Source of the DNA: Guillardia theta CCMP2712
Lineage: Eukaryota > Protista > Cryptophyta
DNA: 64,000 nucleotides
Direction: 5' to 3'
Assembly: GCF_000315625.1 (NCBI RefSeq)
Contig: NW_005434624.1
Span: 320,007 to 384,006 of the forward strand
Shown: positions 15,058 through 20,834 of the stretch, in pieces
Numbering within the stretch: position 1 is the first letter of the stretch
Layout of the letters: each line of letters starts with the position of its first letter
Made by a program: the position numbers and the translations under genes
Notes under the pieces: model-generated
Databases searched by the model: none
Seen by the model: the letters and a program-made list of their open reading frames with translations, nothing else
What the model was told of the DNA's origin: nothing

Positions 15058-15313
15058 GGTAGAGGGGGGGCAAAGTAGACCCCCCCTTTGGCATAAGTCT
15101 TTCAGCTCTAAGGTTTTATAATTACTTTTAAAATCGATTTGTACAATACTTTTACAAACCCCCCCTCTACTTTCCCCCCCCCTCTACCAGCTTATCTTTT
15201 ACTCTCTCTTTTTTTATTAAAGATATTATTATTATTACTATTTTGATAAGAAAAATAATAAAATATATAATATATAAGTATTCATTTATAAATTAGGTAG
15301 AGGGGGGGGGTAA
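15058..15313. repeat. Direct repeat copy 1 (~255 bp), iteron/origin-like
   Basis: Near-identical to 20569-20816. Contains GGTAGAG(G)n units in forward, reverse and forward orientation around AT-rich spacers. Confidence 0.9.
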
Positions 15314-15334
15314 GTGGGTATGTTCAAAGAAGTT

Positions 15335-17281
15335 CTAGAAGGATAGCTCTTTGAGTTTAAGACCACATATACACATAATAGGACTATCAGCATATACCTT
15401 ATTCTTTGCTTTCTTTTTCATAAGTTGATAGTTAGTATCAAAGTAATCATTAATAATATCATATATCATATCGCTCTCAGTCTTTGAAACATCTCGGTTA
15501 TAATATTTCTTATATTCATTGTATATATACTGAGTAGGTATTCTATTATTGATATCATCTACCTTGGTAATATCAACCCTAGCTAAGAACTTATTCTTAA
15601 GCCATCGCTTAAAGTCCTCAACAATTTCATACTCTACTTGTATTTCATGGTTATTATTAGGTTCATCGTCAGATTCTTTATCAGATTCTTCAAATTCATC
15701 TTTAAATTTGATATATTTGACATACCTATTATCATTAGAAACATTGAAATCATTCTGTAAGAGTTTTTTCAATAAATCTTGTCTAGTCACAGTGGTTATG
15801 TTCTGAGTTGTCATTTTCATATAATTTTGGAAGTTAACATATAACTTAGTGATTAATATCTTAGCGTCCGAGTCTCTTGTTCTCTGAGTCCTTTCTTCTA
15901 GAAACTCTTTAAACACGTCAGAACTCTTTTGATATTCATCAGTGGCATATTCAACCTCTTTAGGAATGTTTATTTCTAAAGCAGGATACTTAGCTAATAT
16001 GTTATGTATAATCTTTGACATTAGGTATTTAGGAAATGTCTTTAGTTTGTTATCAATATCTTGGTCTTTTTTAACAAATACCTTACCTTTAATATTGCTT
16101 GGTGGTTGTTCTCCGATATAGAAATAGGCATCATGTGGAACAACTTTAAGCCTTCTCCATGTTCCACCATCGTTGCTAGAACCTAAAGGAATCTTAGGAA
16201 ACTCATTACAGCTTAAGAAGAATTGAGCATATAATTCAAATTCAATAGGTGTTTTATATAGACCTCTAGCCATTATTATATCATGACCTGTTAATTCTTT
16301 CATAACACCTAGATTAAAGACCTCATCTTTATCAGGTTCTGAGGATGTAACTAATCTAGCGCCTTTTAGTCGCTCTAATTCTGATTGTGCAGCGTTACTA
16401 GCTGCTCGTTTTTGTAGGAAGAAAGAGACGGGCATAGTCTTAGCATAGTCACCAAAGGTATTCTGCAATAATTGCATTAATGTGCTCTTACCATTAGCGC
16501 CAGAATCACCCCATAATATGTTAAACTGTTCAATTTTTCCACAACATATAGCAACTCCAAGAGTATCAAGAATGTAATTTCTGATACTTTCATTAGGATA
16601 TACCTGTTTAAGATAAATATCTAGTTGTTTTTGTTTATTATGGTCTGGATTATACTCAACATAGTCATATTTGACCGACATGCTGATGAAATCGTCAGGC
16701 CTTCCATCTCTTAACTTTTGTTCTTCAAAATCAAATACTCCATTTCTAAAACCGATTGTATGTTTAACAGTATCAAGAACATTAGGAAATTCATGATGAT
16801 ATAATAGATGTTTAAGTTCTTGTATGAAATTTTTCTTTTTACCAACAAGCTTGAGAGATTTGATAATCATCTCAGTTTGTTTTATTAAGCGGTCAAATCT
16901 ATCTTTTAATGAGTCACAGGCAGTTTTAAGCTTATTTTTGTATTCTCTTACTTTATTTTGGAATAGTTCAACAATCGTTGTAGATATATTATTATTAAGG
17001 ATAGTACTTTCATTAGATTCAGTAATCCATCTATGGTGTTGTTGAACGAAAACATACCAAGTTTTATCATAATATCTAATAAGAGTATTAGTGAAATGAT
17101 AATCAGGCATAATTTTATTTTTGTATTCAATAATGTCTAGATTGTAATAAGCAGCAATGACAGCAGCAATATCAAAATCAGTACAAGTTGTTATGGCAGC
17201 CTCAAGGAAGTAATCCAACTCATCAAGTTTATCTTGTGAGTGTTGAATAACCAAAAGGGTAGGTTCATTTTTCTTGGACAT
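15335..17281 (-). CDS. D5-like superfamily 3 helicase (D5_N + SF3 + C-terminal winged-helix region; no primase domain seen)
   Basis: IGFRNGVFD...RDGRPDDFIS (D5_N), Walker A GDSGANGKST, Walker B VTSSEP, MKELTGHDIIMARGLY, motif C LSCN, DGGTWRR. Confidence 0.92.
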   Translation of the reverse strand: MSKKNEPTLLVIQHSQDKLDELDYFLEAAITTCTDFDIAAVIAAYYNLDIIEYKNKIMPDYHFTNTLIRYYDKTWYVFVQQHHRWITESNESTILNNNISTTIVELFQNKVREYKNKLKTACDSLKDRFDRLIKQTEMIIKSLKLVGKKKNFIQELKHLLYHHEFPNVLDTVKHTIGFRNGVFDFEEQKLRDGRPDDFISMSVKYDYVEYNPDHNKQKQLDIYLKQVYPNESIRNYILDTLGVAICCGKIEQFNILWGDSGANGKSTLMQLLQNTFGDYAKTMPVSFFLQKRAASNAAQSELERLKGARLVTSSEPDKDEVFNLGVMKELTGHDIIMARGLYKTPIEFELYAQFFLSCNEFPKIPLGSSNDGGTWRRLKVVPHDAYFYIGEQPPSNIKGKVFVKKDQDIDNKLKTFPKYLMSKIIHNILAKYPALEINIPKEVEYATDEYQKSSDVFKEFLEERTQRTRDSDAKILITKLYVNFQNYMKMTTQNITTVTRQDLLKKLLQNDFNVSNDNRYVKYIKFKDEFEESDKESDDEPNNNHEIQVEYEIVEDFKRWLKNKFLARVDITKVDDINNRIPTQYIYNEYKKYYNRDVSKTESDMIYDIINDYFDTNYQLMKKKAKNKVYADSPIMCICGLKLKELSF

Positions 17282-20271: not shown

Positions 20272-20568
20272 TTTTAATATTAGGATATATTTTATTTTTA
20301 ACTTATTAAACTTATTTTTTCCTTATATCACTTTTTTGACCTTTTATCATTTTTGATGTCTTTAAGTTCAGGCCTTATAACAAAAGAGGTTATAGGTTGT
20401 TCTAGTAATAGATAGACCATTTATTAATATAATCACGTTTATATTTTCTGTATTGTTTCATATAGATATCTTTATTCATTTTGATTTTTGGAGAGAAAAA
20501 GAATAATAACCTTTTATCTTGCTACGCAAGCAAAAGCTTAACCAAAAGAATAATAGAAACGATAGGCT

Positions 20569-20834
20569 GGTAGAGGGGGGGGTAAAGTAGACCCCCCCTT
20601 TGGCATAAGTCTTTCAGCTCTAAGGTTTTATAATTACTTTTAAAAATTTGTGCAATACTTTTACAAACCCCCCCTCTACTTTCCCCCCCCCTCTACCAGC
20701 TTATCTTTTACTCTCTCTTTTTTTATTAAAGATATTATTATTATTACTATTTTGATAAGAAAAAATAATAAAATATATAGTATATTCATTTATAGAATAG
20801 GTAGAGGGGGGGGTAAAGTAGACCCCCCTTTTTG
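20569..20834. repeat. Direct repeat copy 2 (~255 bp), iteron/origin-like
   Basis: Same orientation and nearly the same sequence as 15058-15313, e.g. the shared TTTGGCATAAGTCTTTCAGCTCTAAGGTTTTATAATTACTTTTAAAA. Confidence 0.9.

Follow-up and report, generated by a model that had tools for sequence, protein, structure and literature searches.

Three PLVs integrated in Guillardia theta have been described, and the accessible part of that account places a distinct recombinase near the extremity of the element (Yutin et al. 2015, PMC4642659). The locus studied here lies in a window of 64,000 nucleotides, by which we mean the whole stretch of DNA that was analysed. It resembles the G. theta PLVs in the family of its recombinase (41% identity), in its D5-type helicase (about 50% identity), in the presence of a DUF5754 gene, in gene order and in the position of the recombinase near the extremity. 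The locus differs from them in its capsid genes, which are 25-27% identical, and in carrying two capsid-type paralogues and a glutaredoxin. Furthermore, the arrays that bracket the helicase and recombinase genes are direct in the window, whereas they are inverted in the G. theta element L001. An internal copy of the terminal array is not mentioned in the accessible part of PMC4642659. Cryptophyte PLVs with a recombinase are bounded by terminal inverted repeats (TIRs), as stated in the available portion of a more recent study (Bulzu et al. 2025, PMC12220804). The published long-read cryptophyte genomes contain more than 1,000 complete PLVs (PMC12220804). According to the same portion, these elements share with the window a low GC content, a recombinase in place of an rve integrase, replicases that in some cases are non-fused S3Hs, and replication modules that are incongruent with the capsid genes; it holds no description of an internal array copy or of lineage-specific motifs.

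The idea of a repeat-bracketed mobile replication module has already been proposed in a 2026 preprint (bioRxiv 10.64898/2026.10.13.758929), where replication modules of related small eukaryotic dsDNA viruses are set between repeats that are not TIRs and autonomous mobility of such modules is put forward. The cases in the preprint are similar to the window in that non-TIR repeats separate the replication genes from the morphogenetic module and the replicase is mosaic relative to the capsid. However, they comprise genomes with two replicase classes, while the window has a single replicase, and the bracket in the window is the element's own terminal-type palindromic array, kept across several relatives. 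Transpovirons and other capsid-less replication-integration elements are likewise small blocks with a helicase, terminal repeats and no capsid genes. The block in the window differs from these in its tyrosine recombinase, its direct instead of inverted repeats and its location at the end of a capsid-encoding provirus, and no contig carried a window-type block free of PLV genes. Two like recombinase sites in direct order lead to excision, and such sites hold inverted arms, as is the case for Cre/lox, phage att and Xer/dif. The arrays described below resemble these sites in their inverted arms and in the recombinase gene lying beside the presumed site, but the arms in the window family are tandem motifs 24-83 bp apart and do not flank a 6-8-bp crossover spacer. 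In addition, the array motif does not track the identity of the recombinase.

Anatomy of the repeats and of the block between them

An earlier note on this DNA had described near-identical direct repeats, with coordinates that proved right to within a few bases, and had suggested that they enclose an excisable mini-replicon inside a virus. The left, internal copy (15058-15315, 258 nt) is situated between the stop codon of the helicase gene and the start codon of the DUF5754 gene, and consists of a palindromic unit (15058-15188), an AT tract with 12% GC (15189-15295) and an end motif (15296-15315). The right, outer copy (20569-20822, 254 nt) is found about 300 bp upstream of the recombinase start codon and has the same parts, i.e. 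a palindromic unit (20569-20697), an AT tract with 14% GC (20698-20799) and an end motif starting at 20800. Alignment of the two copies yields 242 matches, 7 mismatches and 14 gap columns, corresponding to 97.2% identity; the differences amount to 7 substitutions and three small indels, and each copy has unique flanks. There are no N gaps near the repeats, the N runs of the window being located at 893-1726, 6455-7129 and 36027-36126.

Each repeat of about 255 bp combines a palindromic pair of short G-run motifs with a tract of about 100 bp that has a GC content of 12-14%, and with one more motif. The 14-nt G-run motif occurs nine times in or beside the two repeats; in the whole window 16 matches were obtained at up to two mismatches, compared to 0.41 expected from shuffling. 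As single-stranded DNA, the palindromic unit of the right copy folds into a hairpin (-32.6 kcal/mol, z -6.2). The spacer between the inverted arms measures 83 nt in the window, and 46 and 24 nt in the two arrays of L001. Repeated motifs in inverted pairs, an AT-rich tract and a replicase gene nearby constitute the anatomy of an iteron-type origin, and the origin-like look that had been ascribed to the repeat is borne out by the inverted motif pair adjoining the tract of 12-14% GC. Rfam searches with the arrays returned only sub-threshold matches to hairpins of the miRNA type.

The gene identities proposed for the block were upheld as well: the repeats bracket an SF3 helicase, a tyrosine recombinase and three small ORFs, and there is no capsid-type gene between them. 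The helicase gene (15335-17281, minus strand) is intact and encodes a D5-type protein of 648 aa, in which D5_N (PF08706, 1.4e-10) and DUF5906 (PF19263, 1.3e-10) were both detected past the curated cut-offs. Its best match to the PHROG primase-helicase families (2.6e-60) involves the helicase part alone. Pfam, PHROG and homologue searches revealed no primase or polymerase domain (AEP or PrimPol) in this protein, which makes the self-sufficiency of the block as a replicon doubtful, and no origin-binding domain was identified in the helicase. Homologues in cryptophyte PLVs range from 91% to 50% identity, and the next tier is formed by giant-virus D5 proteins at 33-38%. Among the three small ORFs, only the basic ORF of 71 aa (17413-17628, minus strand) is conserved in relatives; its counterparts in L001, L002 and L022 likewise separate the recombinase gene from the helicase gene. 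Pfam, PHROG and comparison of the relative loci gave no relatives for the ORFs of 123 aa (17744-18115, plus strand) and 57 aa (18164-18337, minus strand), and their coding status is therefore uncertain. Near their start codons, the genes of the block carry a short promoter-like motif of their own, so that the arrays would not be needed as promoters there.

The recombinase (18373-20271, minus strand) is a divergent but intact tyrosine recombinase of 632 aa, with predicted disorder at residues 1-74 and about 499-549. An AF2 model of the protein (mean pLDDT 83, pTM 0.71) displays a two-domain recombinase fold, for which XerA, Cre, TelA and lambda Int were the top PDB matches in Foldseek (probability about 1, TM (target) about 0.5, E 5e-3 or weaker). 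In BFVD, the top match was to Virus NIOZ-UU159 (5e-26), with further matches at E 1e-6 to 1e-7 to a Tyr-recombinase-domain protein of Heterosigma akashiwo virus 01 and an 'Integrase' of Harvfovirus, besides uncharacterised proteins of other giant viruses. The giant-virus homologues have no such arrays beside their genes. Pfam Phage_integrase does not match the 632-aa protein and matches two of its 83 relatives at E about 1e-3. Across these 83 relatives, R340, R419 and R456 are invariant and R481, Y491 and K493 near-invariant, and the profile places the RssY and MRtS..Y motifs (R456; R481..Y491) on box II of a XerC-like chain. The candidate catalytic set has an Arg where His or Trp is usual, and no residue was assigned as the beta-hairpin Lys. 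The G. theta protein GUITHDRAFT_145933 is 41% identical to the recombinase.

The first gene past the internal repeat is the DUF5754 gene (14722-15039, minus strand), which occupies the same neighbouring position in L001, L002, L010 and L012. It is followed by a glutaredoxin-like gene (14442-14720, minus strand) and by two tandem capsid-type paralogues of 508 and 472 aa (9932-12918, minus strand). The latter are homologous to a G. theta PLV protein, and their homologues belong to G. theta elements that are named PLVs in the literature; the AF2 model of the capsid-type protein is of low confidence (pLDDT 47), and Pfam and PDB searches gave no match to a capsid fold. A probable packaging ATPase of 326 aa (3477-4457, minus strand) has weak AAA_14 and PHROG terminase matches and shares 33% identity with the corresponding proteins of L001 and L010.

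The GC content is about 30% up to approximately position 20990 and a host-like 55% beyond 21478. As the right repeat is located at the edge of the 30% GC region, the block is terminal in the integrated PLV and not internal to it, and the placement of the block inside the virus has to be corrected: it forms the recombinase-side end of the provirus. At the left edge of the window the PLV continues as an open ORF, with its far end outside the window. The window probably holds the recombinase-side end of a low-GC PLV integrated in a cryptophyte nuclear genome.

Arrays and replicases in related elements

Arrays of the same kind are present in five relatives (L001, L003, L010, L011 and L012), two of which are G. 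theta PLVs, and are positioned upstream of the recombinase gene, at the junction of the helicase and DUF5754 genes, or at the far end of the capsid module. Since related viruses carry the same kind of element at the same junctions, the repeat is a family-wide cis-element that marks a module boundary and not the scar of one docking event, and the earlier suggestion of a docked plasmid- or transpoviron-like element is not supported. In G. theta L001, arrays of about 150 bp are found at 9289-9437, upstream of the recombinase gene, and at 14497-14649, between the helicase and DUF5754 genes; parts of them align to the window repeat at the DNA level with 75-83% identity. The bracketing copies are inverted in L001, but direct in the window, and recombination in L001 would therefore invert the block and not release a circle. 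Both this orientation and the lack of a primase or polymerase in the helicase speak against the self-sufficient circle that had been envisaged. In G. theta L010, inverted arrays at 4916-5134 (the far end of the capsid module) and 19391-19603 (just past DUF5754) bound the capsid module and leave the helicase outside. L003 has one array upstream of the recombinase gene and a second downstream, with no helicase gene beside it. L011 carries a unit upstream of its recombinase gene at the same distance as in the window, and at the junction of helicase and DUF5754 both the motif and the AT tract have been kept in L012. No array is present at this junction in L002, the closest relative by capsid genes. 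Overall, the internal array adjoins the helicase gene in the window as well as in L001, L010 and L012, irrespective of the type of helicase. Most of the related contigs measure 2-3 kb, and those of L011 and L022 end too soon for any gene outside the module to be seen.

The array motif is a GGTAGAG-run in the window, a AAGGATAAG-run in L001, GTGGAGGGT/GTGTAGGGT in L010 and GGCGAAGGG in L011. It is shared by the window and L012, of which the helicases are 91% identical, but not by the window and L011, although the L011 recombinase is 85% identical across all folded parts and uniformly so along the protein. The possibility that the arms are recombinase-specific sites is weakened by L011, and because the motif fails to track the recombinase, binding of this enzyme to the arms is doubtful. 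The two copies in the window are 96-98% alike, compared to 85% for the orthologous stretch of L012, so that likeness within an element goes together with turnover between elements. Searches with the motif pattern gave no matches in IMG/VR and nine chance matches without PLV genes in metagenomes, and scans of IMG/VR and the JGI metagenomes with recombinase, capsid-type and helicase queries yielded no further relatives.

Four replicase states occur beside the junction among the window and its relatives. The window shares a D5-type S3H with L001, L012 and L022; L002 has a PrimPol-PriCT2-S3H and L010 a VapE-like S3H, and in L003 a replicase is absent. The capsid genes group the window with L002 (54-67% identity versus 25-27% for L001), whereas the helicase groups it with L001 (about 52% versus 28% for L002). 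The window and its nearest relative L012 are 91.5% identical at the nucleotide level in the helicase gene but 74% identical in DUF5754, immediately beyond the internal repeat, a drop that is measured over about 300 nt of DUF5754 and could partly reflect different rates of the genes. The order recombinase-helicase-DUF5754-...-capsid is kept in L001 and L002, and in the readable parts of L012 and L022. All distant pairs share about 40% identity in the recombinase but are not equidistant in the helicase, and L003 has a recombinase without a helicase; the two genes have thus not been inherited as one cassette. Of the swappable replication cassette suggested by the earlier note, the exchange of the replicase gene at the junction stands, but the helicase and recombinase do not form one such cassette. 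Where the neighbours are readable (L001, L002, L003 and L012), PLV genes adjoin the recombinase and/or the helicase, and on no contig examined is the pair bounded by non-PLV DNA on both sides. Among the relative loci compared, which form a thin sample, there was neither a solo module nor a one-repeat allele.

Function of the arrays and origin of the block

The explanation that we favour, and to which we assign an even chance, holds that the repeats are terminal and junction cis-elements of this PLV lineage, that the block is the PLV's own replication-integration module and that a circle route explains the differences in replicase. The two 255-bp repeats would represent two copies of the palindromic 'P array' of the lineage, composed of short tandem motifs, each with a run of G or C at its end and arranged as an inverted pair, together with a tract of about 100 bp with very low GC and one further motif. 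One copy, close upstream of the recombinase gene, would mark the terminal region, and the other the junction of the replication-integration genes and the morphogenetic genes. The arrays may be cis-acting sites on which the element's own DNA machinery works, presumably by means of a binding protein. They could serve as origin-like loading sites beside the helicase gene as well as preferred crossover points or recombination hot spots, and would be kept alike within one element by recombination or conversion. If the arrays are terminal and junction elements of the PLV, it follows that the 5.5-kb block is its own replication-integration module. Excision of the block as a circle is possible in principle: because the copies are direct, recombination between them, whether homologous or assisted by the recombinase, would free the block as a circle with one array, and the reverse reaction would insert one. 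Such loss and insertion of circles would best explain the replicase differences at the junction among the relatives. The arm spacers, which are far longer than those of simple recombinase core sites, and the junction of L002 without an array count against this explanation. Rather doubtful is the stronger proposal that the arrays are dedicated exchange sites, so that a PLV would release its replication-integration cassette as a circle, which another PLV would take up at a matching array. If true, this would constitute a cassette-exchange system in eukaryotic viruses that leads to replicase/capsid mosaicism across PLVs, and the rapid turnover of the motif would set which partners can exchange.

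Alternatively, the block could be a separate plasmid- or transpoviron-like element, made up of a helicase, a recombinase and one origin-like repeat, that docked on a capsid module and can leave it as a self-maintaining circle. Direct repeats of 97% identity with intact helicase and recombinase genes between them would fit such an element, and so would the capsid module of L010, which is itself bounded by inverted arrays with the helicase outside. In addition, giant-virus genes are the nearest non-PLV homologues of both proteins, the replicase has been replaced at the junction, and the same idea has been raised for related viruses (bioRxiv 10.64898/2026.10.13.758929). However, this origin is unlikely in view of the unequal distances of recombinase and helicase, the recombinase without a helicase in L003, the inverted copies in L001 and the helicase without a primase or polymerase; also, no contig has the pair in non-PLV DNA on both sides, with L011 and L022 too short to tell. 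The arrays might also be replication origins only, i.e. iterated sites for the helicase or another protein of the element next to an unwinding tract, with no role in recombination and with an incidental bracket. This is suggested by the inverted tandem motifs beside about 100 bp of 12-14% GC, by the internal array adjoining a helicase gene of any type in the window, L001, L010 and L012, and by a motif that is common to the window and L012, the pair with 91% helicase identity, but not to the window and L011, the pair with 85% recombinase identity. It is nevertheless improbable as a full account: the helicase has no identified origin-binding domain, L003 has an array without a helicase gene beside it and L002 a helicase without an array after it, and the 96-98% likeness within the element against the drift of the orthologue would go unexplained unless recombination or conversion is added.

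The conserved order from recombinase through helicase and DUF5754 to capsid in the relatives, the recurrence of the internal array position in independent elements, and a window without a duplicated gene or a second capsid set all argue against a tandem or nested integration, of which the shared repeat would be the remains of the ends of two elements, or of an element and a fragment. A scar of this kind is quite unlikely, even though a second array type (P*, see below) that resembles another G. theta PLV lineage is located just outside, Segment S (see below) is placed differently in the window and L001, and tandem PLV integrations have been reported in the literature. We consider it very improbable that the arrays act in transcription, as hairpin terminators, insulators or promoters that were duplicated ahead of two blocks of genes. 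Both copies indeed lie upstream of minus-strand blocks, one running from recombinase to helicase and the other from DUF5754 onward, and the hairpins are strong, with sub-threshold Rfam matches of hairpin type. Yet the genes of the block have their own promoter-like motif near their start codons, arrays are also present at the far end of the capsid module in L010, and the turnover of the motif is quicker than one would expect if host or helper machinery had to read it. Finally, an assembly artefact, in which one copy is a misplaced duplicate, is extremely unlikely. N gaps do occur elsewhere in the scaffold, and the short-read contigs of the relatives tend to break near arrays, but each copy has its own flanks, 7 substitutions and 3 indels separate the two, and there are no N gaps close by. 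The same two positions hold arrays in independent assemblies, and this recurrence of the architecture in independent relatives makes misassembly unlikely in its own right.

Under the favoured explanation, this locus and its relatives provide a concrete and checkable candidate junction, namely a lineage-specific palindromic array in the terminal regions (near the recombinase-side end and, in one relative, at the far end) and between the replication-integration and morphogenetic genes. Within an element this array is homogenised, and from one element to the next it is replaced. If the arrays are crossover points, the question of module exchange in PLVs becomes answerable by sequence surveys of long-read protist genomes; if they are origins or terminal repeats only, they belong to ordinary PLV anatomy.

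The recombinase-side terminus

Further features are found beyond the recombinase gene. A second, degenerate palindromic unit (20800-20940), outside the right repeat, has the same type of motif with a different spacer. Segment S (20950-21176, minus strand), in which a TATA-like block is followed by a tRNA T-arm-like 12-mer, is common to G. theta L001 (9573-9680); it lies outside the right repeat in the window, but in L001 it is flanked by the outer array and the recombinase gene. The occurrence of the 12-mer in the window (21073-21084) and in L001 raised the possibility of a tRNA gene as attachment site, but this was rejected, as neither ARAGORN nor Rfam detected a tRNA and the stem is non-complementary by eye. 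Similarly, a hairpin-telomere (protelomerase) site, suggested by the fold match to TelA, was dropped, as the spacer between the arms is non-palindromic by eye. The palindromic array P* (21285-21477) is built of GTGGAGGGT motifs, a type unlike that of the two repeats, and is colinear with the far-end array of G. theta L010. P* is probably the outermost array on the recombinase side, and since it is of another motif type, the terminal structure is more complex than a single type of array.

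Anatomy and setting of the repeat-bracketed block

Two near-identical direct repeats are present as the earlier note described, at 15058-15315 and 20569-20822, 5511 bp apart from start to start and sharing 97.2% identity in a pairwise alignment (242 matches, 7 mismatches and 14 gap columns). Both copies have unique flanks and differ by substitutions as well as indels, and the N gaps are located elsewhere. Each copy begins with a 14-nt motif with a terminal G run, followed ~70-75 nt further on by two opposite-strand motifs, a ~100-bp tract of 12-14% GC and one further plus-strand motif that ends the copy. 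A 35-nt inverted repeat (91% complementary) is made up of the opening motif and the inverted pair, and as single-stranded DNA it folds with -32.6 kcal/mol (z -6.2 against shuffles). The right copy is followed by a second, degenerate palindromic unit of the same motif type (20800-20940).

The block had been placed inside the virus, but it is instead the terminal block of a provirus: GC content is ~30-34% from the left window edge to ~20990, ending near the right repeat, and ~54-55% from 21478 on. The first 892 bases form an ORF that is open at the window edge, and this together with the GC step shows that the window covers one terminus of a provirus of low GC content, integrated in GC-rich host DNA, with the far end lying outside the window. 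The host is probably a cryptophyte. Leftward from the block follow the genes for DUF5754 (14722-15039, minus strand), glutaredoxin, a 168-aa protein that is conserved and one of 287 aa; beyond these lie two capsid-type paralogues, putatively assigned by homology to literature-defined polinton-like viruses (PLVs), and a probable packaging ATPase.

Genes of the block

The block encodes an intact D5-type SF3 helicase of 648 aa, matching Pfam D5_N and DUF5906 above cut-offs and PHROG primase-helicase families (best 2.6e-60). The Pfam and PHROG matches cover the helicase part only, and no primase domain was found in the protein. The second large gene, an intact ORF of 632 aa, has no sequence match in Pfam, PHROG or the PDB. 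Its fold is predicted with confidence (pLDDT 83), and in a PDB fold search the model resembles XerA, Cre, TelA and lambda integrase. Matches in BFVD comprise Virus NIOZ-UU159, entries whose names include Tyr-recombinase-domain or Integrase, and giant-virus proteins that are uncharacterised. Among 83 relatives, R340, R419 and R456 never vary, R481, Y491 and K493 are near-invariant, and the final conserved motifs of the family profile align with box II of a XerC-like recombinase. We accept the ORF as a predicted tyrosine recombinase of divergent sequence. Among the small ORFs, three in number, the 71-aa one alone was found again in relatives.

Near kin of the recombinase and helicase are scarce, being limited to G. 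theta proteins (41% and 50% identity, respectively), Hanusia phi transcripts and a few metagenome contigs. The Hanusia phi transcriptome (EukProt; proteins P0008, P0143, P0151, P0153 and P0154) holds recombinase, capsid-type and three helicase relatives, and PLVs of this family are therefore transcribed in culture. Distant recombinase homologues (25-30%) occur on the giant-virus contigs L007 and L009 near genes for ribonucleotide reductase, poly(A) polymerase and dUTPase, and the next-nearest kin of the helicase are giant-virus D5 primase-helicases (33-38%); thus, both module genes have giant-virus relatives. A promoter-like motif, present as AAAAAGTGATATAAG in its exact form at 20322-20336, was matched 12 times with up to 3 mismatches, where 1.9 matches would be expected. 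Its copies, within 17676-17714, 18163-18177, 18367-18381 and 20322-20355, closely precede the ORFs for the recombinase and for the 57-aa, 71-aa and 123-aa products, and genes of the metagenome contig L002 are preceded by similar blocks.

Arrays in relatives and their possible roles

Eight related loci were fetched, namely L001 and L010 from G. theta and L002, L003, L011, L012 and L022 from metagenomes, plus short ones; most of the contigs are short. The order recombinase, 71-aa ORF, helicase, DUF5754 and, further on, capsid is common to the window, L001 and L002. In L001, ~150-bp palindromic arrays, parts of which are 75-83% alignable with the window repeat, lie upstream of the recombinase gene and in the helicase/DUF5754 interval, inverted to each other. 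L010 likewise carries inverted arrays, one at the far end of the capsid module and one just past DUF5754, the latter followed by a VapE-like SF3 helicase. In L003, arrays lie upstream and downstream of the recombinase gene, which is followed immediately, still ahead of the second array, by a homologue of the 168-aa protein and not by a helicase. In L002 an array precedes the recombinase gene, and the helicase/DUF5754 junction has none. The window motif and AT tract are kept at this junction in L012 (helicase 91%), where the ~118-bp palindromic core is absent (1995-2185 versus window 15040-15334) and flanking motif copies and AT tract are retained; this makes the core unit an indel that separates genomes of ~91% identity. 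No arrays of this kind were found beside the giant-virus recombinase homologues.

The motif type is the same within an element and different between elements. Since the window copies are 96-98% alike, compared to 85% for the orthologous L012 stretch, they were duplicated or homogenised after the two genomes split. The replicase gene at the junction occurs in four states among the relatives. Capsid-type genes of the window are closer to L002 (54-67%) than to L001 (25-27%), and nucleotide identity to L012 falls from 91.5% in the helicase gene to 85% in the spacer and 74% in DUF5754. These sequence comparisons point to an exchange in or close to that array which lies internally. The helicase and recombinase had been proposed to move as one cassette; however, the recombinase is ~40% identical across all distant pairs, whereas the helicase is closer to L001 (about 52%) than to L002 (28%), which points to the replicase gene, and not a fixed helicase-plus-recombinase cassette, as the part exchanged.

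The arrays look like cis-elements for the DNA transactions of the element. With their inverted tandem motifs and AT tract adjoining the helicase gene they resemble iteron-type origins, and by their position at ends and beside the recombinase gene they resemble terminal or attachment elements. Simple binding of the recombinase to the arms is weakened as an explanation, as the L011 recombinase is 85% identical along its whole length and has a unit with a different motif at the same upstream distance, and as the arms are spaced 46-83 bp apart. Both points favour reading the arrays as terminal or junction elements, which would act as origin-like sites and preferred crossover points and whose copies would be homogenised within one element. 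Recombination between direct copies, as in the window, would release the block as a circle. The direct geometry thus makes the excision envisaged in the earlier note possible, but neither a solo block nor a one-repeat allele was found among the related loci, there was no sign of the block replicating by itself, and the inverted arrays of L001 would yield inversion instead of a circle.

Three PLVs of G. theta, whose distinct recombinase is encoded near the extremity, were reported earlier (Yutin et al. 2015, PMC4642659), and a 2025 study already describes cryptophyte PLV expansions, terminal inverted repeats (TIRs) and replicase/capsid incongruence (PMC12220804). Replication modules bracketed by non-TIR repeats, with proposed module mobility, appear in a 2026 preprint (bioRxiv 10.64898/2026.10.13.758929), and the present block belongs to the same kind. 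Added here are the array anatomy, the conservation of arrays at the same junctions and their concerted evolution.

Outer flank and left-hand genes

Beyond the right repeat, a minus-strand segment (20950-21176) shares with L001 (9573-9680) an identical 18-nt TATA-like block and, ~60 nt on, an identical tRNA T-arm-like 12-mer. It lies outside the outer array in the window and between outer array and recombinase gene in L001. ARAGORN and Rfam detected no tRNA in it; it might represent an attachment remnant of tRNA origin or encode a small RNA. Further out lies a palindromic GTGGAGGGT array (21285-21477), whose motif type differs from that of the repeats and which runs colinear with the L010 array at the far end (4917-5125). 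This makes the terminal region composite, with the true end of the element probably near 21477. L010 has a further palindromic unit with another motif (5171-5278); in these elements, several array types follow one another in the terminal regions. Outside the same G. theta PLV, immediately past its far end, direct repeats of 97-99% identity (L010 1-655 and 3334-3976, 3.3 kb apart) surround a 697-aa ORF and may represent an adjoining LTR-type element.

The tandem capsid-type paralogues (9932-11458 and 11500-12918, minus strand) are ~20% identical to each other; both are retained in L002 (67% identity), and L001 has a single capsid-type gene within the range fetched. The 168-aa protein (13950-14456, plus strand) is conserved in the window, L001, L002, L003 and L010 and resembles SLATT_5, a defence-system effector domain with two transmembrane segments, in a weak match that stays below the cutoff. 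The stretch 7200-9930, with 42-46% GC in a ~30% GC element, a 25-bp tandem array (7278-7673) and no long ORF, may be an insertion or decayed genes. The N gaps 893-1726 and 6455-7129 leave the provirus partly unread, and ORFs 850-2442 and 6392-7192, which span them, are unreliable. Purine/pyrimidine microsatellites of (GGGA)n and (GGA)n type abound in the host-like part (22358-22478, 26200-26450, 35907-36020 and others).
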